Shown here: piece after piece, positions 42,569 through 62,716 of the stretch
How positions within the stretch are numbered: position 1 is the first letter of the stretch
Layout: every line of letters begins with the position of its first letter
NCBI GenBank assembly: GCA_038496445.1
Contig: JALMLS010000322.1
Span: forward strand, 1,116,001 to 1,180,000
Reading direction: 5' to 3'
DNA: 64,000 bases
Origin: Trichosphaerium sp. ATCC 40318
Taxonomy: Eukaryota; Protista; Tubulinea
Notes under the pieces: model-generated
Seen by the model: the letters and a program-made list of their open reading frames with translations, nothing else
Told to the model about the DNA's origin: nothing
The model's database searches: none
Position numbers and translations under genes: made by a program

Positions 42569-45500
42569 TCAAAGGTTCTGGTACAGATGGCTTGATCCCG
42601 ACATAGTCGCGTTTTCGTCGTAAATGCCGCTAACATTGGCGCTGTCCATTTGTCCACCTCGGCTAGCAACTGCTTGATACGCTTTGGCACCACCAGCAGT
42701 GGCTGCAGCTGCAACTACAAGGACTGCTGCAACAATACCGATTATAGCCTATTTGAGCAATAGACTAGTTAGTTTTATAATAAAGCCAGCGCAAGACACA
42801 AAAAATAAAGGGACGTACAGCTACACCGAGACTGGCTTTTGGCGTGGCAACTGCTGAAGGCGCCTGAAATACGGTACAAGCAAGATCGATGGATTCGCAG
42901 CCAGTGGTTTCGTTACAGTACGCAACTTCACAGACGTCCGGACGAGCCACACATTCCACTGGTTTCGTAGTGCAATTCCCTGTAGCCTCATCGCAGAATG
43001 CTATTTTGCACTTGGATGTGTTCTCTGGGATGCACTCCGTTTCAGTTCTGTTCTCGTAAACACATCGCTCAGCGCTTGTAGTTGCATTACCATTGCAAAA
43101 ATCGTTGGTGCAGGGGTTGCCGTCATCACAAGCAATCTTTGGATCGATTCTGACATTACTGCATTCTGTAACAAAGTCACAGGTATCTATCGTGCACATA
43201 TCGTTATCATTGCACGGATCAAGGTTCGCTTTATAGCTACATTTTCCAGTATCTGCATCACATGTGTTGTTACCACATTTAGTATTTGGCGCACAAGTGA
43301 TAGGTGTCGCAACACACGACCCTGTTGCAATGTCACATTGGTACGTTGCGCATTTATCGTTACAAACACCAGGGTTCTCTGGAGTGGCTACGCCAAACTG
43401 ATCTTTGCCAGCACACTGTGTGAAAAACGGTTAATCACCAGAACTTGGGGGTGGGATTGATAAAAATGGAATGGATGAATACACGTACGATATTATTCTG
43501 TGAGTCCGTAGGGTCGCAGGTAAGACTTACAATCTTGCCACCAACACTACGCTGGCACAAGTTGCACTCTCTATTTGCACGTATAACGCAGCCATTATAT
43601 GGCATGGATGGATAGGTGCCCGCTGGTGGTCCTGCAGGGTCACAACCTGTTACTGTACATGCGTCCTGGTCCACACACAGTGCTGCGTGGGAAGCACGTT
43701 GACACCCACCAACACGCTGACATGTAGCAACAACACACGCATCAGCACTAACGCAAGCATTTTCTAAACGAGTTATATTAGTCCTCCAGTCATGTCACAC
43801 GCGAAGAACCAAAGCAACGAAAAACCTCTCCCAAACAAAAGAAAATCAGATTTTCGAACGCACTTATTGCAGAATCAGTGTGTTTGCACTCTGGTCCATG
43901 GGGATTGTAGTTACCACCTATAAGTGTAGGTGCGTTTTCAGGACCAGGTGGATTTTGGCAGACATCGTCTGTGCAGACGTCCCCATCATTACACTGAGCA
44001 AGGCCTAACACACAACAATTAGTAAACCAAAAACAATTGTACAGGTTAAGAGTCCTATGAACCATTTTTTGAATATTTCGACAGTACAAAAAACGCAATC
44101 TAAACCAATTGGTCTATATAAGTGTACCATTGGGACCAACAGGATTGTGCGGCAAATGTTGACAACCTACAGCATGAGAGGCGCAAATGTCTTGAGTGCA
44201 AGGGTTTCTATCACCACAGTCGTTTGGGCAGAGGCATTGGTTACCACAAGCGCAGAACCCTTTGCATGCAGCACCACAGGAGCTACTGCCCTTACACAAG
44301 GTTTCAACAAGGTTCTTACGGACTACTGCAAGATCTTCTGGTCTTGCTGTTGGTGAAAAAAAGGCATGGGATGCATCATTTTCGACTAGTCCTAGCAAAG
44401 CTTTCTTGTCGATACCTTCTCTGCTATTCGGGCCCGATGCTTGTTTGCCAACGCCCACAACATAAACAATATAACCTTCGCCCTGTGGAGGAGGCTTGGT
44501 CAATACGTCTTGGTAGATGTGTTAGCGATCACATTTGCTATTTTCTCCAGCAACAGACAAATGCCGGGGCAAAGGGGGTTAGCACGTACTTGTCCTGATG
44601 AGATTTTCCCAACCTCTGTTGTTTCCGTCTTGCCTATTGTTTACGCCATCTGTCATAACAATCATGACACGTTTAACACCAGGCCTAGCTCTTGACAAGG
44701 CTGATCTCGCTTTGTCAATGCCACAAGGGATGCATGTCCAGCCTCCCAGTTTGGCATAGTTCCGGTAGTTTTGAGAAATGTCGGTCAACTTGTGGATCAC
44801 GCTGTTATGATCTGCTGTAAGTTCCAAGTCTATCTTTTCTTTACCCTCAGTAGAGTAGGATGATATACCTTAAACAGCAAAAAAAAGTTAGATTATTGAA
44901 TTACACTTTGTGGAAAAGGTAGTCGACTGACAGTCAACATCGACTACGGCCAGAGAACTGTATTTTTTCAAAGAAAACCGCACCAAATCGGACCAAACCA
45001 GGTTCAGGAAAGCTTCTAACTACTTCTCGGGCCCAGGCCGCTACGTTTCGGAGTTTTTCATGAAGTCTCATGGATCCTGAGTAATCCAACACTGTACACA
45101 CGTCAGGCAACCCCACCAGCAAACAAATAACGCACCAAATACTAGATCTAGAGGCTCGACACACGTTTCTTTACAAGCAGCCGTCTTTGCAAAAGCGTTT
45201 ACAGCTGTGCCAGGATAAATCGCGTCTAGTCTGAAGTGTCCAGGCAAAAAGTGGAACGTTGTGCCATCAGTGTAAGTCATTCTAACAGAACCGAGCGTGT
45301 CAGAATAAATGGTTCAATTTTGTTTTTGTTTCATTTGACAAAGAAGGGCTACTCCTGAACCAACAACAACAATAAAATAGAGTAAAAAATTGTGACGCAC
45401 TTGCAAACATGGTTGTTCGTTGGATCAAGCCACAAATTGCTAACATCTCTGGCGCTCACTGCTGCGTTTCTAATGTAACGTACACAGTTGCGCGGGTGTT

Positions 45501-45998
45501 TGCCAAGTTCACCTTGTGGGCCTCCATATATTGCTGTAACTACTTCTACAGGACCTCGGTTGAAACTACTTCCATCAATGTGCATGAGCGGCAGTACGGT
45601 GGTGTCTAATTTGTTCAGCGTTTCACAAGAGCCAGGACATTGTCTAAACACTTGATTCTAGGTGTCATTTAGTGGGAGTGCTTTTTTGCAGTGTAAAATG
45701 TGTAAATAGAATCCCGTACTGTGGCGAATTGGTAAATGTACGAAACAAAGACGTGACCAGGCGCTGGGTGATTATAGTGCACAGCAAACCGTCTCCCAGG
45801 AGCGTCGTACGCAAGGTAAGCGTCGTATCTGCCCTAATTGATTTTTTGGATGAGCTACAAGCGTATAAAACGTCTAATGGACCGAACCTTTTGAGTTGGG
45901 TCGTCACTGACTAGCACGCGGGCAGAAAACACTTGCGGCGATGCGCAAGTAACTGCAACAAGTGCTGATACAAATATCAGTATCAAACCTTGAAGCAT
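42569..45998 (-). CDS. Type I membrane protein: signal peptide, VWA (MIDAS), Cys-rich CxDxxxCTxDxC repeats, TM, short Tyr-motif tail (Sib/integrin-beta-like)
   Basis: 'MLQGLILIFVSALVAVTCA'; 'LDYSGSM'; 'VMIVMTDG'; repeats 'CDDGNPCTNDFC','CNDGDVCTDDVC','CGDRNPCTQDIC'; TM 'AIIGIVAAVLVVAAAATAGGA'. Confidence 0.8.
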
Positions 45999-46176
45999 CG
46001 CTTGCAGCAGTTGATTTTTTGAATATGGAAATTTATTTCCGCATTTGGTCAATACTCTGCGGCAAAGTGAAACAAACAAAAATTACTTTATAAGCGAACT
46101 ACACGTGCAAGGTTTTTACTACTGCAACTCTCAGGTAATTTGTGAGAGGGAAAAAAGCATTCACAATACATTAGCG

Positions 46177-48680
46177 CTAACACAAGTGCATAAACTGCTC
46201 TTTGTTCTGCTCAGGAAGACTGGCTAATTTGAAAGGGATGTGCGTCACCGATTGGTATCCTTCTTGTCGCGTTGGTAGCTCCAACTTTTTGCGGAAAATG
46301 TTGTACGCTATTCCAGGTACTGGCTTCACGCCTTCAACAAGCTAAAACGAGAGTTAACAATGAACTTGGTTAAAAACTTATTCCATTTCCCATAACGGTT
46401 GGATTAAAAACGATGACCATGAAAATAAGAAAAAAGCAAATCCGACATCCACACTGTATTGTACGTACCCAGCGGTAGTTGTTGAGGTGTTTGGCCAACT
46501 CAATAGAAGTAGACATTACGAAACATCGGACGCGAATGCCGTGCTTAAGTGCGAGTTGTAGATATGGTTGTCTGAGAGAAAAAAATCCAAGTAAGTACAC
46601 TTGGAGTGTAGACCAGGTTTTTATGGCGACTTACCTTGATATTTTACTTGGATTTGTGTTATCTATGACTACATTTCGGCCACCAATGAGTGCAGTAGAC
46701 GCCGCTTTTAAACATTTTGCTATTTGGTAGTGTTAAGTTTGAAGTACGATTCCTTACATGTCCGTGTACCTTTAGTTTTGAGAATATCGCGATTAATTCT
46801 AGTGTATCCATTTGCTGCCATAATCGTCTTGGCAAACGTTGATTTTCCGCTGCCAGGATAGCCCACCTACGAGAAATGCAACATTAATAAACAGCTTGAG
46901 TCTAGTTCAACTCGAAGTGATTTGTTGTTTCAAGAACGCACAAGTATGATCATCTCCTGTTGTGTGCCAATGTAATCGCTTGGGTTGTGTGTGCCTGGGT
47001 CATCACATAAGGCCTGCAAGTCTTCAGGCGAAACACCGTCCCATCCAAAAGCCTCAGGTCCGGCATCCTGGAAGTACTCTGTCTCTGTTTTGAAAGCAAT
47101 GGACAAGTTCCATGCAAACTTCCTGTCAGAGCAACTAAAGTCCTTCTTTCGTGACCCAACAGCAGGTCTACCAGCAGCATCACCGACGTACATACAATTT
47201 GTCTTATCTACAAAAGAAAAAAAAAAGGTTAAAACAGGCCTTTGTTTGGGTTGCTATGGCGTTTACCTGGAGTAATGCCATCGTTGAAACTGCTGCACAT
47301 GAGATCCCACATGGCCAAGTTTGGTTTTCGGAACTCGTCACCAGTAGTAGCGATAAAGGCTTGTATTGGAAAACCAAGTTCGGCAGCGATATCCTCGATT
47401 TTTCCTTTAATGTCGTCCAGCTTCTGTTTGCCCTTGCTGATGCCGGCTTGATTTGTGAATATTACAATTTTGTGCCCGTCACTGCGAGCCTTATGCAACT
47501 TCGAGTGCATCGTCATAGGGAACATCCACTCCCAGTCATGACGATCTGTTGGGAAGCGGCGCCCGGATTTGGTTACGATCAGAGTAGAGTCCATGTCGAA
47601 GCCTGTTATCCGTGCGGAACCTTGTATACCCGGTGGATTGTACACAAGGCATGTAGAATGCATTGACCAATTGCTAGACCCCTAAATGATAACAGGTCAG
47701 TTTAGGATTGTCAACGGAGAATTGTACCTTAGGTTCAGCAGGTTTTGTTGTTGTTCTTTTTGACGTCCTGCCGACATTTGAGATGGTTGAAGCCTAGAAG
47801 AAATCTATGTTAGTCCCACCAGATATTTATCACACGTGTTAACATCACGGCACGCACTGTATTAACGCTTCTTAGCGGTTGTTTGGGTTGTTGTGCTATT
47901 CTTGTGTGTCCGTGCTGTGTCATGCTTAAAGCGCTTCCCCAGATTTGAGAGCCATGATTTGACTGTGTTGGGTTGACTCTGTATGCAGGCTTTGAAGTCG
48001 ACGTAGTAGGTCCTCGTGGCACGCCTGCAAATCCAGAATTCTTGTGAGGTGTCAATGTTTGACATAATGCGTCCACAGAGGGACGTGCAGCATGCAGATT
48101 TAGTGCGTTCTCAATGGCCGAGATGCCAAACAAGCCGTTTTGTTGTCGCGCGTGCATTGATTGGAATGGCGCTGAGGATAAAATTTGCGATATTTGCTGG
48201 TTTGGTAGTGATGTATTGTATCCCTGCGACGCTTTACCGCCATTTGTGCGTTCAACAAAAATTTGCGCGGTACGTTCGTGGAATTGCTTCAACCACGTCA
48301 AATCTTCCTATTCAACACGTTCGTTTTAGTTGTGTATTTTAAAATAAAAAGTTGTACAGGCCATGGAATGGAGAAAGGATCTTCTTCCTCTGCTACTACG
48401 TATGTAGGGTCCACCTCTGCAGAACCTAAACGGGTGTTAAAGCCGACAAGCCAAACAGGTTCCACGAAAACCTAACACTGTGTCTAAACATACACGCTGT
48501 TGTGGAAACACAGCACTTGAGCGTATCCGCGAGCTCTGGGAAGTCTTTTGTAATTTCAAAGATTTCAGTTGCTGCAACGATTTCTGGTTTAGTCTGATGC
48601 TTAACAACGTAGTCATGCTCTCTGGTAGTGAGACTTCCAGCTCTGCGTAAAATTTCAGCGAGTAGTGCAATCTGCGACAT
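46177..48680 (-). CDS. PNKP: Polynucleotide kinase 3'-phosphatase with long non-FHA N-terminal extension
   Basis: 'GFDMDSTLI', '[10 protein letters not shown]', 'FRKPN', 'YVGDAAGR...[10 protein letters not shown]', P-loop 'GYPGSGKST'. The N-terminal exons splice in frame; the start is approximate. Confidence 0.88.
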
Positions 48681-49050
48681 AATTTAAAAGAATAGAGAGA
48701 ACGCATTTGACTCATGGTTTGCCTAGCGCTGTAAGCACGTGTTGACACTATTGCCTCTTACACGCACTCTTTTAACGCCATTTGAGTTCTGTTGTGGCAG
48801 GCAAATGTTCGTAAAACCAAAAATGTACTGTTGGCTGTGACAAATCTTTTTTATTGCTTCTCTTCGTCATCACGCGTTTTTTCATTTTGTTGAACGTTAC
48901 CGCGGTCTGCTGGGGAGCGCGTACAAATCGGATAATTGAGTGATTTCTTCCAAGCGACGTAAATTTGTTGTCCCGAGAACACCAGATAAGGACTGCAAAG
49001 CTGATTGGTGCAAACTGCGAAAGCAACAACGCAAACATCACTAAAATAAC

Positions 49051-52000
49051 ATGCGCGTTGCTATTATAGGTTCTGGCGTAACTGGGCTTGCTGCCGCCTC
49101 ACATCTCCACAAACACGGTGCGCGCTGCAAACCTAACGATACACTATTTTTCTCGTTTGTATCTCGCAAACAAACCAAAACTAAATTCGTTTTGTCAGGC
49201 TGCGACGTTGTTGTCTATGAGGCAAGCGATCACGTTGGTGGGCACGCTCACACCCAATACGTTAACGGTAAGTACTTTTGTGCGAGCTGCGTAAAAAAAA
49301 AACCTACAGCGTCTAAGAACACTCTAGGTATACCTGTAGATACAGGTTTTATGGTTTTGAACAGAGTTACGTATCCAAACCTTCTGAAATGGTTCAAAGA
49401 GAGCGGTACGCAAAAGCAAACTTTTCAAAAAAAAAAAAGCTCTAGCTCCCTTTTGTGTTACGCTCTCATACTCATTAACTCTCTCAGGCGTGCTGTTAGA
49501 GAACTCGGAAATGTCGTTTTCTGTGAGTTTGAGCGACGCAAACATAGAGTGGAGTAGCGATGCGCCGTTTGCTTCCGCTGTACGTTTAAAACTATCGCTA
49601 TTGTATTTTTCCGTGCTTCGTGCGCAAAGGATTTATTCCGTTTCGCCTTTTTGCACTTTTTATCAAACTGCGACAAAAACTTATTGCAAACATAGTCTAG
49701 CTACTATAGTCCCAATTTTTACGGCATGTTGTACGATATTACGCGATTTAAGCGTGATGCAACGCAGTTTGTGGAAAATAAAGAGCCAGACACTACAACA
49801 ACCATGGAGCAGTTTTTGCAAAAACACGTACGACCGCATTTCCCAATTCTCAAAGGTCGGAACATTTAGTTTCCGATCGGGCCAATTTCGCGTTTGTGGA
49901 TCCAAACCAAAGACGAAAACTGCCCCATATACTCCATGTCCCTACCATCTCCTTACATTCTTTTTTTGTAGGGCTACGGCTACTACTTTATACACTACTA
50001 TTTGGTACCAATGATGGCAGCGATTTGGTCATGTGACACGGGAGATACACTCAAGTTTCCAGCCCTGTTTCTCTTGAAGTTTTTTTATAATCACCACCTA
50101 CTCCAAGTATCTGGTAGACCACTATGGCTCACTGTCAAAGGCCGCTGTGCGGATGGCTACGTTAGTAAGGTATGGCCTACCAGAAAAACAAACAATTCAC
50201 CAGTCATTGACAACGTGCTACATAGGTAACAGCTCCTTTTGCTGACAAGATTCATGTAAACAATCCAGTAAAGGAGGTGTATGCTACCTCTACCGGCAAA
50301 GTAAAAGTAGTGGCTAATGATGGTATGTCTTTGTTTGAACCAATACATAGTTCATATTATATTTCGTGACTAATGGGGCCGCTTAGAGGATGAGTTTGAT
50401 CGTGTCGTCTTTGCAAACCACGCACCAGATGTCTTGAAGATACTAAAGGATGTATTGCCTGAAGAGCAAGATGTACGTTGCGCTAGTGTTGGAACTTTTT
50501 CTGACGTGTGGGTGTTGTTAGATCCTCAGCAAATTCAAGTACCAAGAGAATGATGTATGGCTCCACCACGACACTTCTCTCATGCCTAAAAACCCTGCAG
50601 CATGGGCCTGCTGGAATTTTATTGGAAATAGTGACTGTACGAGAAAAAACCCATTATCGACACTTGTGCTGTTGCTGACTGCTTGGTTAGTGGGATGTTG
50701 CGTCACATATTGGTTGAAGCGGTTGCAGAACATTGAATCAAATGATCAACCCATCTTCGTTACCCTTAACCCTAGCACTCCACCAAAGGCCGAGCTTGTT
50801 GTGAATCACTGGAAGGCATCACACCCAGTGCCATCATTGCACACTATCAATTCGGATGACCTCTTTTCAAAAATTCAAGGAAAACGAAACATGTGGTTTG
50901 CAGGTGCCTACCAAGGCAACGGTTTCCATGAAGATGGCTTCAAGAGCGGTATGGCTGCTGCCAATGACTTGTTGCAAGGTACGTTCTAAGCGCCATACCT
51001 GTTGTGGCCTGTGGCTAACAGATTATTCGCTAGGACCATGGAAACCACTTCCAAACAATGTCATGCATCCGATCGGCATGGTCGATTCAATGTGCCGCAA
51101 TGTTGTCCTTTCGTACCTCAAGTCAACCATCTCATCTGGTACACTCGAAGTACACGACATTGGACATGGTGTCGTACGTCTTTTGTTATTATTACTGGAT
51201 TCTCTCTCTTGTTCTTGTGGCAAATCGACTAACACAGATGGACTTTAGACTACCATGGGCGATGGTAAGGAACCAAAGGCTATTCTGACTGTAATGCGTC
51301 CACAGTTTTACTCCAAGATGTGTTGGCGTTCCGCTCTAGGTACTATCACCCACACAGGTTATTGTTAGGCTGTTCCAGCTCACAATATTTCTAGGTCTTG
51401 CCGATGCTTTCATCGCCGGAGACGTATTGTGTGATGACCTTTGCATCTTGTTTGAACTCATTGTAAACAACAGAAAGAAGAAAGGTACGATATATCACTT
51501 TTTGGTTAAAGACAAGTTGTCTTTGTTTGTGATTGTAGTCGCTCACTCGCTTCTGTAGAAGGTGCTATTGCACCTAGTTTGATGACATCCATACTTGGAC
51601 AATTGACAGCTTACTGGACGCACCAGAGCCGAAATAACTCGGTTAACAACACGCGTCAGAACATTCACGAACACTACGATCTAGGCAATGACTTTTTCAA
51701 ACTGTTCTTGGACAAATCCATGTCGTACTCTTGCGGTATTTTTAACAAACCAGACGAAAGCCTTTACGACTCTCAAATGAACAAAGTGAATCGGTTGATC
51801 GAGCTCGCTTGTGTCAAACCAGGAGATCGTGTGCTGGAGGTAAGGAGGAGCCTTCAACCAATGACCTTATAAGTTATTAACCTTGTTTTCTGTAACAGAT
51901 TGGTTTTGGTTGGGGTACAATGAGTATTGAGCTGGCCAAGTTGGGTTGTAAGGTAACTGGATTGACTTTATCATCTGAGCAGAAGAAATACGCAGAACAG

Positions 52001-52854
52001 CGTGCTAAAGAAATGGTAAGTTAAACACGTGCATGACCCAATATCAGTGAGCTCAGTGTCGTTATCAGTATCCACCTCCATCACTTACACTCGCACTCTT
52101 AGGGCGTTGCTGATAATATCTCTTTTGAGCTTGTAGATTACAGACAGTATGTACCTGAGCAGAAGTTTGACAGAATAGTTTCTTGTGAGATGCTGGAAGC
52201 AGTTGGTACGATTGGCTCAATATAAACTCCTTTTTTTTTTACTTGTTCTTTAACATATCGACTAACTGTTGGCACTAGGTCATGATTATTTGCCTGACTT
52301 TTTTGATGTTTGCAACAAACTCCTCGGGCCAAATGGTATCCTGGTTGTCCAGGTCATTACTATCCCCGATAGCCGATACGAGGAGTACCGCAGGACAACA
52401 GACTTTATTCAGCAATACATCTTCCCAGGAGGTCACCTTCCATCCCTTGGCGCACTAACAGAGGCCATGGGCAAGAAGACGCCATTCATGGTGCGTATAT
52501 TGTAATTTGTTCTTTGTGGTTTTTACTGACCGTGGTTTGTTCCTATCAAGGTTGAAAGCGTTGACAATATTGGTCCACACTACGCAACAACATTACGTCA
52601 TTGGTTGAACCTATTCAGAGCCAAGGTACATTTCTCACAACAAGTTGTAATGTTTACATGGTACAATGTTGCTAAAATTGTGATTCTAGATTCCTGAAAT
52701 CAGATCTCAAGGATTCTCTGACGAATTTATTCGCACGTGGGAGTACTATTTTCAATACTGCGAAGCCGGGTTCAAGACAAGAACTTTGTCTGATTTACAT
52801 ATAGTGTTCACGCGCCCTGGTAACTATGATCTAGATACACAATTGTACAAATAA
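49051..52854 (+). CDS. Fusion of FAD-dependent oxidoreductase (COG2907/UfaD-like) and cyclopropane-fatty-acyl synthase-type SAM methyltransferase (UfaM/CFA-like)
   Basis: 'MRVAIIGSGVTGLAAA','VGGHAHT','VDTGFMVLNRVTYPN','WFAGAYQGNGFHEDG'. After an in-frame intron (50979-51033) come 'NIHEHYDLGNDFF.LFLDKSMSYSC','VLEIGFGWG','SCEMLEAVG','QYIFPGG','YYFQYCEAGF'. Confidence 0.92.
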
Positions 52855-53505: not shown

Positions 53506-56244
53506 CTAGTTCATTTCGTCAAGTTTGGTGTATGTCGCAGCAGCCATTATCACGTCGCTGTTCAAATCTCTTCGTAGGTGAAGGACACACCTCTCCAATG
53601 TGTGGTAAAGTTTGACGTGGTTTTCCATCAACGATAATTCTAAAAGGGGTTAGTGGCTAATCTCAAGAACACTAGTAAGGTAATCACAAGCTGCTCATTA
53701 AAAGCGCGCAAAGTTTCATGTGCGAGTAATGCTTGGGTGTACGTACTTCGCCATGTTTCTCTTTGGGACTTGTACAAGCAGTCGCGCATCATCGCCTTTG
53801 TAGGGTTCGATAGGAGCTGAGAATAGTCGCTCAATCCAACGTTAGGTACGATTGTTATATCTCCCTGTTTGATGCAGTTAGACAAACAACGATTTCAATA
53901 AAAGCAAGGACAGCAGTCCTGTCCGCATAGTGACCCGTTTTTGAAAAGATTGTAATGGTAATCACGTACCTTGTATTGCTGTGACACCAAGTTATGTAAC
54001 ATGTTCAACTGTTGTGGCCACAAACCAAGATGTTCGAGCTGTTCGATTAAACAATTAGCACACGTGTACATACATATTTCTGCAATACAAAAAACCGTGC
54101 GTCTCAATGTGGTGTACCTGTAAGATGCGATGCTTAAGTTCGGACGTTATACAATATGCTGCTTTACTAAGCAAGCTGTCGTTGATCTGATCTGTAGAGC
54201 TAATGAATGGTATAACGTGGGGATTAACCTAAAAATAAGGTCAACAAAACGTGCATGTGAATACTGAAGAGTAGGGTTTACCTGAGAAACAATAAAGTGA
54301 TTCACGTTAAACAGCTCACGCAACCGTATCATAGGCAAGTCATTCTCAACGCTGCCATCAGAGCACTTGATGCCCTTAGGATCATACCGTCCAATATTGC
54401 CATTCTCGTCTTTTGATTGAAGCTAAAAAACCGACGTGAATAACAAAAAGACATGCTTAAAAGCCAAAATGTAAAATATAGATGCCACGCGTGTAAGTAG
54501 ATTGTTGAAGCTCTAAATGTGGTTCACCTACCTCTACAGGTTCGTATAAAAATGCTAGCGCACATGAAGCGAGTGCTGCAGAGAAAACAAGAACCTACCC
54601 GAGGTTTAACGTCAACGTGAGGAAAACAAACAAGTTCAATGACTAGCGCGCGTACATTAGGTGCTGTGATGTAGTTTAAGAGGCGCGGATGATCGAACGT
54701 CTTGTTGCTGCACACTGTAATGTTGAGGATACAGCCAGTGCGCTGGTATGCCTCTTGAAAGGTGACATTGCCGATATTCGATCTAATGCAATCACCGAGC
54801 TTATTGATGTCCATCAACACGCCTAGAGACTGGAATCAACAAAAATAACGGGCGATGATAGAGCTAAAGAGTGGAAAGAAGGATTGTTTGTACCTTTTGT
54901 CATTAATCGTGCCAATTTTCTGTTTAGTGATCCTTCAGAATCGAATGCCTCAAATTGTAGATCTTCAAATTCGTTTTCAAGCATCTTTGAGAGCTCAGAT
55001 CTGGTCTTTGTACCTAAATTCATCTTTTTTTTAAAATGGATGCCTCGCCATTGTTTAAAACTTTTTTCACTAGCGTACCAACGAATGAAGCAATAATAGA
55101 ACCAATACTAGATCCAGAAATAATTTTGGGTAAAATATCTAGATGAACAAATCAGAAAAAGCGAATAACTTGTCCAGTTTTAGTTCTTTTTTTTCTATTT
55201 TGGATTTTTTTTGAAAAAAGATCTTCTCGACGTACCATTGTCGTGTAATACTTTGATGACACCCAAATGGTATAATCCTAATGTAGCACCACCACTGAGA
55301 CACAATGCTGTTCTACCATATGCTTGACGTGCGGCAAAGAAGAATTCAAACTTTTGCTGCGTATTAATGTAAGTAGAAATCACGTGGCAGTATTTTCGTT
55401 TTTGGATTGTGTGGGTTCAAAAATAAAAGCTCCGTTGATACAGCTAACACAGACCACGTGGGTAATGGTGTAATCTGTGCTAGGCGCATACTCGGGTATT
55501 CTGTAATTTGGGTGACTAGCGCTAGAGCCGCGGTTTTGGTACCTGTAGAGATACTGTTTTAAAGTTGCTGTGACATATGATGCGAAGAAGCTCGTCTGTT
55601 TCGTTTGTGTACTCCTCTATCAATTGTTTGGTACCAAAGTAACATTTCTCGTATAGTTTTGGGTTTCCAATGCCGGAAAAATTACGTCGCATCCCTTTAG
55701 GAAGATTATAAGCAAAATGTCGTCCCAAAAAAAAAAAAAAAAAAAAAAAAAACAACAAGAAAAAAAATTGTACCGTTACGGAGGAATAATAAAACTTCTT
55801 GAATATTCTCTGCGCTCAGTTTTGCCTTGTAGTATCGTAGCATAGCTAAGCGGTTTCGAATTGTTGTGTAGTCGTAAATATTCGATTCATCCATCTCTTT
55901 CCATTCATTGTTTCCTGAAATTCGCGTTAAAGGGCTGTGGCTTCGGGTATAGCAACACTACCTAGCTTTTTGTCGAGGGATAACGCTGCTTCTTTCCAAG
56001 TGGCGTAATCCTCGCTACTATCGAGTACATTGGTCAACCTTTCAAGTTCTTCTTTGTCTGGGTATACTGTTGTGAGTAGTGCCTAAAAATGTTACACTCT
56101 GAATTCCGCTCACCACGGAGATGTATATACATGTGCTGGTGCCCTTTAGAAGGGTGGCGCACAAAAGTAGGCTTTTTGCTCAAAGGTTGTTGAATGTACC
56201 TTTGGTAAGAACGCACTAGCTGCCCAGTACGCGTATGAAGTCAT
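53506..56244 (-). CDS. Patatin-domain triacylglycerol lipase (SDP1/TGL3-5 family)
   Basis: '[21 protein letters not shown]', 'IISGSSIG' (GxSxG), '[14 protein letters not shown]', '[10 protein letters not shown]', '[25 protein letters not shown]'. Confidence 0.9.
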
Positions 56245-56698
56245 TTTTATGCTAGAAATTTACTACTGTACTTGGGTTATCCTGCCAATCACAAACTTTC
56301 AGTTACTTATATAGATACCTAGTGCTAAAGTGCTGGGTGTGGCTGTTGACTTATTTGAATTTTGAAATGATTTTTGTTTTTGCTGTCGCTTAATGTGGCG
56401 TCTTTAAGCACTGCGAGCCCATACTGTAGTAATGATTAAATGCAACTTACGACACTGACCCATGTCTGTGTAGCATCGTAAAACGTCAGTATGCGAAAAT
56501 AGTTTCAAGGAAGCCAATTCAGGTATTACTACCAATCCAACTATTAAAAATTTCTGATTTGTATTTATACATGGTGGAACTACAACGTAGATCATATGTG
56601 GCGAAATTGCTATACATGATGACGTGATGAATTCCTCTGGGAGTTCAAATATGATTAACCAATTTAGAGACAGATCGCCACTACTGTAGCCAATGAGG

Positions 56699-58492
56699 TT
56701 ATTGAGGTTTTACCTTTGGGTGTGGAATGTATGGCACGCCACTGCAAATGAGTTTAAGCGCTTGCCAATGTATACCAGCAAAGACCTTGAACGTCATCAA
56801 AGGATGCTTCGCTAAGATCCACAGTAGATTAGATTGTGTCACTTCATGCCTTTGCACGTGCAATGACGCCTATGACAGAAAAATTGGTATGTAAAGTAAA
56901 AAAACCCTTCCGTACAATAAAATTGAGCTTTTGTGTCGTTTCGTGTGTCATAAGCCAAGTCATCTGTAGCAAACGGGTTAGTACGCTGTTTCAGTATAGA
57001 AAAATTGGATGCATACATTCCAGTTCTCGTTGGGCGTATCGTACTTTGCTCGATAGTCATAATGCATTTTAAAAAATGGAGAAACATGCCTGGACAACGC
57101 CGATATTAGCAGATAGACTCAAAGGCAGAAGAAATAAAAACCATGACGTACATTATTTTAGTGAATTTGTCTGTCATTCTCTTGGGGTTTAGTGGAGTGC
57201 AGGCGTGGGTGTAGTAGCATTTTTCACCCCTAGCACAAATGAGTTAGATTTACTGGCGTTGATCGGTGTATACAGCGGTACCAAGGTGTGTTGGTTACTT
57301 CAGAGAGCATGGCGACCAGCTTGCCAGATTCATCCTTGCACCAATAATACGAGATTGGATTAAAAGTGTATCCCCAGTACCGCCAGTTTGTAAGCAAGTA
57401 AACCTTACCTAACATTAAAACAGGTTAGTATTTCTGAAATGCAGGAAGCTGCCTTATGTTCAAAAACACAAACCTGACACTTTCTTTCCTGTATCTTGGA
57501 ATACCTTTTCGTGCACTTGTTCACGACTCAAGTATTCTGATTTGCGTAAATAACCCAACGCTGGCTTTTGTGAGTCTCCTACAAGTGAACTGTTTTTAGT
57601 TCATCATTTATACTAGATATTGACCTTTGACCAGTGCGTACCTGTGTCATTGCTTGACCATAGCCAATACTGATCAAAGGCATAATCAGTATCATCGTTG
57701 AGTTCAATCATCATCATGAAAACATCATAAGAAAATTTATGATCACGTGGCGATGTATCCGTCTTGAAACGACGATGGAATACTGATCCAGCGTAGATGT
57801 ATTTCTCTACATGAAATGCTCTGGATGCTAGAATCTTTTCATTCGGGCCGTTCAGGTCGCCGACAAGTCCAAATAAATTGAGTACAACGAGCACTTGGTA
57901 GGTCATATCGAATTCCCACAACTGATGTGCAAAATTAGCGGCTAAAACGTCCGCTTTGTGATTGTTTTGATAACCTGTCAACTGTCAACAATGTGTTCAA
58001 CCGTGTCGTGGAGGATAAGGGTGTTACCTTGACCTGCTGTGAGTAGCGCTACAATCGTGTTATTCACGCCATCCGCTTTGTACGATTTGGTGCCATAAAA
58101 CCCCACTTCGAGGCATCTGTTAGCGAGATAAAGCAAAATCTCTGGTATTATAACGCCACTCAACACGCCGAACCTACAATGCGTTAAAACAATACGGATT
58201 TAACGCTCACCATAACGCAGATACCACTGACGCTGCTATCCATACAATTACGCGCAACAGGGTTGACGCAAAACTCGTTCTTAGCGCCTACTGTTCTTCA
58301 ATCATTACGCAAATGCGCTTAAAGTACCTTTGAGTGTATATTGACGCATGACAAGAGATAAAGAACGGTAGTTGTAAAAGCTGGTGCGGTAAAAAGTTTC
58401 TCCTTGTGCCTCAGGACGATATTACTTGCTACTTGCCGCCATTGCGCTTGTAAAATGCCAATGGCGGTTAGCTGTACGAGATATCTTATCAT
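56699..58492 (-). CDS. DUF1365 (UfaO-like) protein with N-terminal degenerate membrane delta-9-desaturase remnant (3' end uncertain)
   Basis: DUF1365 motifs 'GSVFHRRF...HKFSY.VF', 'YWGYTFNPISYYWC', 'EVTNTPW.E', 'HVSPF', 'PLMTFKVFAGIHWQALKL'. These are preceded in frame by TM segments and 'NNTIVALLTAGQG|YQNNHKA...WEFDMTYQVL..L..FGLV'. Confidence 0.85.
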
Positions 58493-58636
58493 GACGATTC
58501 CCTTTATTCGCGCTATATCCTAATGGCACGTTATATAGCGTATGCACCAAATGTAGGTTTATTGCGCTTGAGACAGCATCACTTAAGCGAGTAGACGAAG
58601 TCGCTCTTATAAGTGTTCCAAAAAACCTAAACCACT

Positions 58637-61192
58637 ATGGCCACTATTCGCGACATTGTACTAGGCATACGCCACGCGGTATGTAAGCGTATTCACATAC
58701 CATACATTAACAATTATCAAGACAAGCGCTGCAGATAAAAACCAGGTTCAAAAATTGACTTCGGAGGAATATAGAGATATACAGCGGTTCAAATTACGTG
58801 GGTAAGCGCAAAATAACAAGTAATGTTTTTTGAGTTGTGCACGTGGTTTGGATAGCAGATCTACGCCAAAACAAAACGCAAAACAGTCTGTGTATACGCC
58901 CTAACACTGTCCTTTAGAGACGAAGAATTTGAGATAAAAGCCTACGCTCCTCACGTATTCCATCACTTGCGCAAGATACATGGTATTAGCGCCAAGTCCT
59001 TTTTGGTGCGTCTTCTTTTTTTTGTAATGTCTGTTTTCGCCTGTCTTGTATTGCTTGTATCGTCCATTGTTACAAACGGTATTAGGGTTCTTGGATATTA
59101 CCCGCTAAAAAAGAGGATGTAACCCTGGATGAGTCGACAGGGCGGTCAGGATCAATGTTCTACATGACCGAGGATAAGAAGTATTTTTTCAAGACGATCC
59201 TACACGCAGAGGCACGTGTCGATGGTTGTCACTTTTTGTTTTTGACATTGGCACAGGTTGGTGCGTTGATGGTAATGTTAGAAGACTACGTCAAGGTATG
59301 CCCGGTTTTTAACAGTGAGTTTCTTGTGGATATTGAGTTGCCTACTACTACAGCATTTGAACAAACACAAGCGATCTTTCATAATGAAAGTCTTTGGGAT
59401 GTATCGCTTAGAAACTGGACGGTAATGACGGTGTAGTAAACATGCTTTGACTGATTTCCCTATTAGAACAGTGAAGCCAACACAAACATGGTTGATTGTT
59501 ATGGGTAATGTGTTACCTACAAGACTGAAGATACACGAAAAGTACGGCTTTCTGAACGGTTTAGTAAAAGTTAATTGTTGTGTTCTCAAGATATGATTTA
59601 AAAGGACGAACAGCAAAACCTGGAAAGAGTTACGCTGAGCGTGGAAAGACGTCTGAAGGACCTGTGAAGGATAATGAGATTAATAGAATATTAAAGTTTA
59701 TTCAGTACTACTACTACAACCACCTCTGTAAACAGTGCTGACAAAGGTTAGTGAAGACGACAAGAAGTTATTCATCAAGCAGGTGACGGACGATATAAAT
59801 GTAAGCACTTTTTTTGACGCCAGTTTTTTTGACTTAAATAATTGTTTAGCTTCTTGGCAGGAAAAATATTATGGATTATTCCCTGTTAGTTGGTTAGGCC
59901 CAATTCTTATTTACTTTTTGTAACATCCGTGTGACAGGTATTCACCATGTTGGGGAACTTGACAAGGACGAGATGGATAAAGTAGATCAAGTTATTGAAA
60001 CTGGTTCTGATCCTGAAAGGCCACGTGATATTGCAGAAAATGCTTCAGAGGTTCATCTTTAAATATTATTTCTTGTGTATTTGTATTAACTCTTCTTGAA
60101 GGATGAAAAATCCAGCGATTCTGGAGAAGCAAAAGCACCAGAGAGTGGTGCTGAAGAAAAAACAGAAAAGAAACATGGAAGGCAAAGGAAGAAGGCTGTA
60201 TCTGAGGGCGCAAAATCTAAGCCAAAAAAAAAGAAGGAATCATTTGGCGAAAACTTGTATACTGTCATGGTAATACCCCATGAATTAAGGTCTTTCTTTA
60301 AAACCAACGTAGGTTGACGATATAGCTCCGCTTAAATCAGATATAAACACGTGGGACACCAAGAAGATATTGGAAGAGGAACGTTTCATGGCAGAAAGCT
60401 GCAAAAGGTATGTTTGCTTATTGCTAGCCATAATAACGGTTTTTTTCTTCAAGTCCTTTTGGATTCGGTATGGAATGTGAGAATCCTACCACTGGTGGTA
60501 AAGAGGCACGACATGCGTAATAGACATATCGTGAATAATTGTGCTGATATATTAGATTGTGTTTATAGGCATCATCGATTGTCTCACCAACTACCATCTT
60601 GGCAAGCGTGTTGCTCATTTTATGAAAAAGTTTATTTGGTATGTGACTCTTTAAGGCATTTCGTTTAGAAACCAACATCACCCTAATTTTGTGCGCTTAG
60701 GGAGTCTTCAACACTATCAACGGCATAACTTTTCATTTCATTAGAGTACGATGTACTAATTGTGCTAACTGTAGGTCCGTGCCGAGTTTTATGCTGAAAG
60801 ATTCTGGCATTTTATGACCCACGATTTAATCGGTGAAGAAGTAGATCCAGACAAGGAAGAAACAAGGCACGTGACCTTTTTATTTTCAGTGTACGTTTCA
60901 ACTCAAATTGTACTAACTAGCAGCTCGATTAGGATAAAGACAGACGAGCCACAGCTCATTCCAGAGCTTCGTGTTAACACTGATAGGTAACCCATTACCC
61001 ATTCAGTTAAATGTTCCTCCTTACACATGTGCCAATAGGGTAAGAAAGCGCAGTCGTAGTTTGGGATATGGCAACGTACGAAGGAACACCATCAGCGGGC
61101 ACACGCCGTTTAAAGGTGAAAAAAAAGAAGGAGAAGAGAAAGATGGTGGCAACAAGGATCAGGACGCTGAAGAACAACATTCTTTTGAGTGA
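58637..61192 (+). CDS. Phosphatidylinositol phosphate kinase (PIP5K/PIP4K family)
   Basis: 'IKAYAPHVFHHLR', 'GRSGSMFYMTEDKKYFFKTI', 'YDLKGR', 'MDYSLLVG', 'IGIIDCLTNY'. Confidence 0.9.
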
Positions 61193-61597: not shown

Positions 61598-62716
61598 TCA
61601 AGTGAAATAGTGAATATATTGAATACCCATTGACTCAACAGCCTCTTTTGTAACTTTAGAAAAGAGTGTTGCAACACGTTTTAGCGATTTGAGATATTTC
61701 AAACAATCATTTGTAATATTATCACATCCACACAGTTTGAGGTGTTCAAGGTTGATCAATGTCTTTAAACCCAAGTCTGTTATCCTAGGGGAATAAACAA
61801 GATGAAGGTATTTGGCATTAATCAATGCTTTGATGCCATCATCTGTAAGATTATTTCTCCCACCATTAATACGAATTGACTGCACATTGCAAAGGAGTCG
61901 GAGCCACGAATCCTTTGGGTCAGAAAGATGAATCTCGTGAACATCTTTGAGTGCCTTGATCGCTTCAATAGTAATAAGACGTGTAGAACCAGTCAGCTTA
62001 ATTGTGTGTACACCAACAAGACTTTGGATTGCTTCATCTGTTACTACACGCATGTAGCTCAGGTCAATATTATGCACACCAGCAAGCGACATTATACCTT
62101 TAGCAGTCACATGAGTTTCATTCAAAGCAATAGTGTGCACTCCAGCGAGTGCTTTTACACCTTCATCTGTCACTTGTGTACCCTCCAGATTAATATTATG
62201 AACACCTTTAAGGGCTTGTATACCTACATTTGTCACTTCAGTGTAACTAAGATCAATTGTATGAACACCAGCAAGTGCTATAACACCTTCATCTGTCACT
62301 TGAGTGTAACCAAGATTAATCTGATGAACGCCAGCAAGTAATTTGACACCTTGATCATCAATATCAGCCTCAAAAAGGTTGATCGTATGTACTCCAGCAA
62401 GCCATTTCATACCTTCTGCTGTTATATAACTTTTATGAAGAGCAATGCTATGGACGCCTGCAAATTGTTCCAGAAGCTCATCTGATGGAAACCCCTCAGA
62501 ATCAAATGCCAGCAATTTGATTTCTGTGTGTTTCATGATCCCTTTATGTTTTACAACCTGTTTCGCTTGTTTAGCCGTCCTTATCCTCACACTATGATAG
62601 CCGATAATGTCATGAATAATAGAAGAAAAGAGACAACATGTTTGACAAGCTGCAAATCGATCTTTTATATTTTCTAAAATACTTGCTAGAATCTCGATAG
62701 GTATATCCAATAACAT
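61598..62716 (-). CDS. Intronless F-box + 22-aa leucine-rich-repeat protein
   Basis: F-box-like 'LLDIPIEILASILENI....ACQTC'; 66-bp tandem repeats encoding 'LAGVHTIDLSYTEVTDEGVKA'; a single 372-aa ORF. Confidence 0.9.
   Translation of the reverse strand: MLLDIPIEILASILENIKDRFAACQTCCLFSSIIHDIIGYHSVRIRTAKQAKQVVKHKGIMKHTEIKLLAFDSEGFPSDELLEQFAGVHSIALHKSYITAEGMKWLAGVHTINLFEADIDDQGVKLLAGVHQINLGYTQVTDEGVIALAGVHTIDLSYTEVTNVGIQALKGVHNINLEGTQVTDEGVKALAGVHTIALNETHVTAKGIMSLAGVHNIDLSYMRVVTDEAIQSLVGVHTIKLTGSTRLITIEAIKALKDVHEIHLSDPKDSWLRLLCNVQSIRINGGRNNLTDDGIKALINAKYLHLVYSPRITDLGLKTLINLEHLKLCGCDNITNDCLKYLKSLKRVATLFSKVTKEAVESMGIQYIHYFT

Follow-up and report, generated by a model that had tools for sequence, protein, structure and literature searches.

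The fusion gene and its transcript

The window analysed here is a stretch of 64,000 nucleotides (nt) of the genome of the amoebozoan Trichosphaerium sp. ATCC 40318 (GenBank assembly GCA_038496445.1, contig JALMLS010000322.1, forward-strand positions 1,116,001 to 1,180,000). On its minus strand lies a gene whose product ends in a DUF1365 domain, the domain of the bacterial fatty-acid oxygenase UfaO, and begins with a region that resembles an acyl-CoA delta-9 desaturase. It is nearly certain that this gene fuses a histidine-less desaturase remnant in frame to DUF1365.

Transcript evidence comes from contigs of three public runs belonging to two studies, X1 from a 2015 study and X2 and X3 from one 2023 sample. 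Although not recorded as RNA, these runs represent cDNA, since their contigs are spliced and carry remnants of the SMART template-switch oligo at 58551. Contigs of all three define one minus-strand transcript from 58551 to about 56561 with nine introns, all of them GT..AG. When the exons are joined by script, they form a single open frame of 440 codons running from the ATG at 58492, the first of the transcript, to a stop codon ending at 56699. In the MMETSP0405 transcriptome of the same strain, protein P0018 has exactly the sequence of the 440-residue product; P0018 was the query of all full-length searches, while single exons were used in the others. The sequence-only reading had placed DUF1365 on the same message as the N-terminal part, and this is borne out by an X2 contig of 1314 nt that covers 56561-58289 and then continues into exon 1, so that the N-terminal exons and DUF1365 must lie on one RNA. 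The gene is built as follows.

58493..58551 (-): 5' untranslated region (UTR); the cDNA 5' end is at 58551, and an X2 contig has the SMART template-switch oligo as a loose end
58328..58492 (-): coding part of exon 1, residues 1-55; helical, moderately hydrophobic; contigs X1/2, X2/5 and X3/10
58288..58327 (-): intron 1, 40 nt, GT..AG; joint 58286/58327 in X1 and X3
58211..58287 (-): exon 2, residues 56-81; a hydrophobic stretch resembling transmembrane segments (TM) 3 and 4 begins; contig 4 of X2
58174..58210 (-): intron 2, 37 nt, GT..AG; joint 58171/58209 in X2 and X3
58028..58173 (-): exon 3, residues 82-130; desaturase-like TM4 and 'NSxxH' region (ANRCLE) up to 'VALLTAGQG', by hhalign and BLASTP
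57975..58027 (-): intron 3, 53 nt, GT..AG; joint 57972/58026 in X1, X2 and X3
57805..57974 (-): first part of exon 4, residues 130-186; degenerate third histidine box QNNHK and desaturase-like C-terminal helices (WEFDMTY..FGLVGDL)
56699..57804 (-): remainder of exon 4 and exons 5-10, residues 187-440 and stop; DUF1365/UfaO-like domain
57579-57641, 57409-57473, 57230-57281, 57090-57151, 56964-57016 and 56870-56915 (-): six downstream introns, GT..AG
56561..56698 (-): 3' UTR; contig ends near 56561-56570

Intron 3 had been proposed from the letters alone, together with a peptide that would run straight into DUF1365 once the intron was removed. The intron is real, being skipped in contigs of the three runs with up to 149 nt covering the shorter side of the joint, and the peptide corresponds to residues 65-170 of the 440-residue product. 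An alternative acceptor is used in X3, where the intron at 57590-57641 is 52 nt long instead of 63; the 11 nt thereby added shift the frame, and this isoform is probably non-productive. A search of the genome (70.3 Mb in 642 contigs) also revealed a second copy of the locus on contig C276, at 45336-49420, which is 100% identical over at least 3.3 kb; it is a haplotig, a duplicate made by the assembly or else the result of a very recent duplication.

The DUF1365 domain

DUF1365/UfaO proteins are a recently recognised class of oxygenases for which we know of no cofactor, reductant or structure. The Pfam profile of the domain (PF07103) matches residues 189-436 of P0018 over positions 1-234 of its 235 (E=1.7e-62; score 211.5 bits, cut-off 25), and Pfam and NCBIfam searches with single exons match DUF1365 as well. 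Among 80 bacterial homologues, 42 columns are at least 95% conserved; P0018 keeps 34 of these near-invariant residues, and several of the changes in the other 8 are conservative. The residues conserved throughout the family include those of the motifs H.R, NP..YY, ENTPWE, KHVSPF and HP. The closest bacterial DUF1365 proteins are only 32-42% identical to P0018. Judged by sequence, the DUF1365 part of P0018 is apparently intact. The predicted structure of residues 187-440, a high-confidence part of the model, is a beta-rich barrel with a long helix (396-426) at its C-terminal end. When the full model is searched with Foldseek, the DUF1365 part weakly matches nitrobindin and the FABP-like Ycf58 in the PDB, both of which are barrels for hydrophobic ligands.

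In R. sphaeroides and R. palustris, UfaO acts together with the methylase UfaM and the flavin desaturase UfaD to build furan fatty acids on phospholipids (PMC7380195). UfaO inserts O2 into the methylated diene acyl chain of the phospholipid to yield the furan fatty acid, an O2-dependent conversion demonstrated for the proteins of these two bacteria alone (PMC7380195). P0018 resembles these two, RSP1090 of Cereibacter/Rhodobacter sphaeroides and RPA2570 of R. palustris, in its full-length DUF1365 domain with the near-invariant residues. It differs in that the bacterial proteins are stand-alone enzymes of about 250-280 residues, whereas P0018 adds an N-terminal membrane region of 186 residues that is partly desaturase-derived.

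A desaturase-derived N-terminal region

The origin of the N-terminal region was examined with a profile and a hidden Markov model (HMM) built from 26 bacterial-type acyl-CoA delta-9 desaturases. hhalign places residues 87-182 of P0018 on columns 211-310 of the profile (probability 97.8%, E=1.3e-12), and the custom HMM scores 52.9 bits over residues 65-184, corresponding to HMM columns 180-298 of about 320-354. BLASTP against the intact desaturase domain of P0002, a related fusion protein described below (its residues 195-293), gives 38% identity at E=8e-18. Even a six-frame scan of the whole genome with desaturase profile A2 recovers exon 4 on its own (57811-57975, E=5.1e-6). In agreement with these matches, the language-model neighbours of the N-terminal region are FA_desaturase clusters. 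On single exons, Pfam and NCBIfam detect no desaturase apart from a weak DesA_fam_desat match of NCBIfam to exon 4 (E=0.0058), with exon 1 blank, and a sequence search of residues 1-185 against the PDB returns only chance matches to PsaJ. On these alignments, residues from about 65 to 184 are derived from a bacterial-type acyl-CoA delta-9 desaturase, of which they make up approximately the C-terminal third of the domain.

The sequence-only reading had proposed comparing about 200 N-terminal residues with desaturases. The hhalign (E=1.3e-12), BLASTP (E=8e-18) and six-frame (E=5e-6) values uphold a desaturase origin for residues of about 65-184, but residues 1-64 match nothing: no homology was found for them, and when residues 1-86 are set against the desaturase profile, hhalign yields E=0.73. 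A MAFFT alignment does pair 'RHKEKLFTAPAF' with the first histidine box and 'NIHS' with 'EDxHS', but such pairings have no statistical support and a desaturase origin is not claimed for residues 1-64. Compared with bacterial-type delta-9 desaturases (DesC-like, PF00487; human SCD1, 4zyo), the region from residue 65 or 87 to 184 covers TM4, the 'NSxxH' region, the third histidine box and the C-terminal helices, while about 180 N-terminal profile columns are missing and the complete four-TM domain of about 250-300 residues is not present.

The only marked hydrophobic stretch of the region, at the Kyte-Doolittle peak of residues 59-99, is predicted to be helical, with a predicted local distance difference test score (pLDDT) of 86-88. 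The full-length AlphaFold2 (AF2) model has a pLDDT of 84 and a predicted template modelling score (pTM) of 0.74, and contains a confident long helix at residues 55-102; the former histidine-box loop, residues 136-147, has a pLDDT below 50.

Loss of the catalytic histidines

The conserved histidines of membrane desaturases, which serve as ligands of the di-iron centre, are indispensable. Thirteen histidine columns, those of the three histidine boxes included, are conserved in at least 25 of the 26 bacterial enzymes, and P0018 credibly keeps just one of them, the H of QNNHK. As had been noted from the letters, the third box is thus reduced to QNNHK and boxes 1 and 2 are absent, with neither HxxxxH nor HxxHH found upstream; 'NSLAH' has in turn become 'NRCLE'. 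Because the metal-binding histidines have been lost, the remnant cannot desaturate, and the earlier description of it as catalytically dead holds with 1/13 of the conserved histidine columns retained. The desaturase part of P0018 is, by this prediction, a pseudoenzyme module and cannot be a functional desaturase.

Other genes of the desaturase family occur in the same genome, on contigs C53 and C15. The one on C15 (about 279464-280375 of assembly G000, equivalent to L014:1312-2223 on the minus strand) is an intronless, desaturase-like open reading frame (ORF) of 303 residues with HRKFIH and HNNHH boxes. It has no obvious second histidine box, its Pfam score of 26.6 bits is below the cut-off, and the encoded protein is possibly a further desaturase that is unusual or degenerate.

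A family of desaturase::DUF1365 fusions

Exon 4 spans the junction between the two parts, and an exhaustive HMMER search with it, followed by selection of longer proteins that match across the junction, was used to find related fusions. At least eight lineages carry the fusion, represented by P0018, P0002, P0004, P0025, P0008, P0003, P0005 and P0013. P0018 belongs to a eukaryotic family of desaturase::DUF1365 fusions that has not been described. Term searches of the full-text literature on DUF1365 gave no description of such a fusion in the passages they retrieved, in line with the sequence-only reading, which knew of none among described proteins; it is however not a one-off, but a member of a small eukaryotic family with intact and degenerate representatives.

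The intact member is P0002 (574 residues, EukProt Clim_evm28s156), whose prefix we take to denote Corallochytrium limacisporum. It has a full FA_desaturase domain (about 270 residues, E=3e-20) with 13 of the 13 histidines, followed directly by DUF1365. P0018 has the same domain order and a similarly tight junction, and differs in keeping the last third of the desaturase and 1/13 histidines where P0002 keeps the whole domain. In the other seven fusions the desaturase part is degenerate or truncated. P0004, P0025 and P0008 (600-642 residues) retain a near-full-length desaturase domain with 7/13 histidines, while in P0003, P0005 and P0013 the desaturase part is truncated as in P0018, at differing points. 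These six are metagenomic or transcriptomic sequences on eukaryotic-looking contigs and share with P0018 a degenerate desaturase N-terminus joined to DUF1365. Several of the metagenomic fusions are single uninterrupted ORFs on contigs with eukaryotic genes, which shows that the fusion is not an artefact of gene modelling. In a word search of 5.8 billion proteins only three cover more than 90% of P0002, and the family is therefore rare; the same search with P0018 returned stand-alone DUF1365 proteins only and no closer relatives.

Two quick trees, both with long branches, bear on the history of the fusion. The DUF1365 tree groups the eight fusions with three eukaryote-like sequences, apart from the 80 bacterial loci, in one clade with a support of 99 in the Shimodaira-Hasegawa-like approximate likelihood ratio test (SH-aLRT). 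In the desaturase tree the four near-full-length fusions form one clade as well (SH-aLRT 96). Both trees fit a single fusion event followed by decay on one or several occasions.

Whatever the degree of truncation, HMM columns of about 200-300 are retained beside DUF1365 in 8/8 fusions, and the motifs NN..VALLT.G.G, WE.D.TY and FG..WDL are preserved in this C-terminal module. The junction that follows is about 5 residues long in P0018 and a few residues long in P0002, P0005 and P0013. Were the remnant a neutral leftover on its way to being lost, with DUF1365 working alone, the disappearance of all catalytic histidines save one, the deletion of large parts of the domain down to HMM columns 180-298 and the variation in truncation from lineage to lineage would all be expected; moreover, bacteria and plants have DUF1365 proteins that function, or at least occur, with no such remnant (PMC7380195, PMC10940516). 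This explanation is nonetheless quite improbable. The frame of P0018 stays open across the three introns of the N-terminal region, with correct phases, and the same C-terminal segment is found in every fusion lineage. The remnant is 38% identical to its intact homologue in P0002, compared with 45% for the enzyme domain. Between P0004 and P0025, the ratio of nonsynonymous to synonymous substitutions (dN/dS) is 0.23 (0.23-0.36) in the degenerate desaturase part and 0.18 in DUF1365, values obtained with saturated dS.

The bacterial operon and the local gene context

The sequence-only reading had stated that a desaturase often heads the bacterial oxidoreductase-DUF1365-CFA operon. Of the 80 bacterial loci whose DUF1365 most resembles the eukaryotic domain, 19 carry an acyl-CoA desaturase no more than 10 kb away, and in 18 (about a quarter) it lies on the same strand, about 1.3 kb upstream, which confirms the arrangement for that share of the loci. 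At L036 the order is FA_desaturase, Amino_oxidase, DUF1365, CMAS, CMAS. A longer operon, L102 (ERZ25039603 contig_8948, 922727-935701), reads CMAS, DUF2878, DUF1295, DUF6134, Lipocalin_2, FA_desaturase, Amino_oxidase, DUF1365, CMAS.

Direct descent of the fusion from such an operon was considered and is unproven, since the fused domain is not nested among the sampled operon-linked desaturases in the desaturase tree. Of the three desaturases that match best, one lies in an operon, one outside it and one at a contig end. Hence, of the proposal that the remnant is a fossil of the operon, the desaturase ancestry stands, but its immediate ancestor would be a eukaryotic fusion.

Counterparts of the other operon members are found close to the fusion gene, about 4-9 kb away in the case of the UfaD-like and UfaM-like exons:

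from 49051 (+): Amine-oxidase/NAD_binding_8 exons, UfaD-like
51579-52502 (+): CMAS exons, UfaM-like
55198-55383 (-): weak Patatin match within the stretch of about 53600-56000, E=3e-4, below the Pfam cut-off

An amine-oxidase gene also adjoins the fusion gene on two other contigs. Together, the oxidase and CMAS exons, the Patatin match and the fusion gene make up a candidate fatty-acid modification cluster. In Arabidopsis, AtUFAO1 (AT1G30130, DUF1365) and AtUFAMD1 (AT3G23510, a UfaM and UfaD fusion) are found on lipid droplets (PMC10940516). The closeness of the oxidase and methylase exons on one strand of the window parallels their fusion in plants. For AtUFAO1, the DUF1365 domain alone is reported and no desaturase-derived part is mentioned (PMC10940516).

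Proposed role of the remnant

The eukaryotic route to furan fatty acids is not yet settled, and it is against this background that a role for the fusion can be outlined. We favour, somewhat beyond even chances, the explanation that a pseudo-desaturase membrane module anchors a UfaO-like enzyme. The ancestor would have been a eukaryotic desaturase::DUF1365 fusion, surviving intact in Corallochytrium, whose desaturase part decayed to a pseudoenzyme module in Trichosphaerium and at least six other lineages while the C-terminal piece was kept against DUF1365. What remains in P0018 would be the TM3/TM4 hairpin region and the C-terminal cytosolic helices, holding the UfaO-like domain at the cytosolic face of the membrane, beside its acyl-chain substrate, and probably providing that domain with a fixed structural interface. 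This substrate would be supplied by the products of the nearby amine-oxidase and CMAS exons, UfaD-like and UfaM-like. Furan fatty acid chemistry is what we infer for P0018.

Within this explanation, the anchoring itself is narrowly the likelier option: the remnant would act as a membrane anchor and fixed scaffold, with DUF1365 at the cytosolic face next to the lipid. In SCD1 the N- and C-termini are both cytosolic. It is because of this topology, and of the lipid-droplet location of AtUFAO1 (PMC10940516), that such a placement can be suggested. The membrane anchor or scaffold for UfaO put forward by the sequence-only reading is thus plausible, and is retained here at that strength.

Several observations weigh against the interpretation of the N-terminal region as a desaturase-derived anchor. 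The Pfam family FA_desaturase (PF00487) does not reach significance on P0018 (E=0.21), and a six-frame scan of the genome with it yields no match at the locus even at E<=10. Among PDB structures, human SCD1 fits the AF2 model of residues 1-186 best (4zyo; probability 0.97, E=0.14, 80 columns, 2.8 A), but this match is weak and not independent, the model being moderate (pLDDT 68) and obtained from a desaturase-rich alignment; a wide structural search with the same model returns mostly generic long-helix matches. Residues 59-99 are modelled as one continuous helix, compatible with either a hairpin or a single span. The contigs are also compatible with an extra internal transcription start or with translation from Met152. 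The dN/dS figures come from P0004 and P0025, of another lineage than Trichosphaerium, with dS saturated. Finally, P0011 and P0171, eukaryote-like sequences of the same DUF1365 clade, have no desaturase part, so the module is dispensable. In the desaturase position P0011 carries a plain N-terminal hydrophobic helix, as would suit a simple anchor; such a helix is missing from P0171.

The failure of Pfam and the lack of relatives for the first 64 residues could even suggest that the similarity is spurious or the gene model wrong, the locus holding two genes or an untranslated 5' UTR with a chance resemblance to desaturases. This can be set aside with great confidence: the BLASTP, hhalign, custom HMM and six-frame statistics are independent of Pfam, the spliced contigs of two studies join all exons and the first ATG opens the 440-residue frame, and homologous fusions exist as single ORFs in intronless metagenomic genes.

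A more elaborate role than anchoring has also to be weighed, in which the remnant, as a conserved pseudoenzyme partner, supplies part of the acyl-chain tunnel, passes the phospholipid acyl chain on to the DUF1365 barrel or serves as the docking site of an electron donor, for instance cytochrome b5, for the O2-dependent UfaO reaction. The retention in 8/8 lineages of the whole C-terminal cytosolic module, which is more than a TM helix, speaks for it, as do the tight junction with DUF1365 and a conservation of the remnant near that of the enzyme domain; UfaO, moreover, needs O2, and no reductant is known for it (PMC7380195). The histidine-box loop, on the other hand, is the least confident part of the model, and the module is missing from P0011 and P0171, replaced in the former by a simple helix. 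Overall, a partner role of this kind appears rather unlikely, though a good deal less so than neutral decay. Slightly more doubtful still is the broader proposal that the desaturase module serves a eukaryotic furan-fatty-acid machine as a conserved, non-catalytic subunit, kept after the loss of its iron site because it makes up part of the substrate path or of the electron-donor docking site for UfaO. If true, P0002 of Corallochytrium would be bifunctional, coupling delta-9 desaturation directly to downstream modification of the acyl chain, and the module would be the first case described of an integral-membrane desaturase turned pseudoenzyme.

Under the favoured explanation of a membrane-anchoring remnant, a natural fusion to a desaturase points to the place and the company in which UfaO works, namely at the membrane and next to the enzyme that introduces the double bond of its precursor. 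The fusions, intact, half-decayed and truncated, form a comparative series for the role that a desaturase scaffold may keep after its chemistry has been lost. Given the nearby UfaD-like and UfaM-like exons, Trichosphaerium is also a candidate eukaryote for the synthesis of furan or related modified fatty acids.

Other features of the window

Upstream of the fusion gene lies a plus-strand neighbour whose cDNA 5' end, marked by the SMART oligo, is at 58615 and which has a GT..AG intron at about 58678-58720. With 5' ends at 58551 (-) and 58615 (+), the two genes are transcribed divergently from a shared promoter that is very short, about 63 bp. The neighbour resembles a phosphoinositide kinase by eye, and Pfam was blank on one of its exons. 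Further along, an intronless ORF of 372 residues at 61598-62716 (-) contains an F-box and many repeats of the LRR_6 type.

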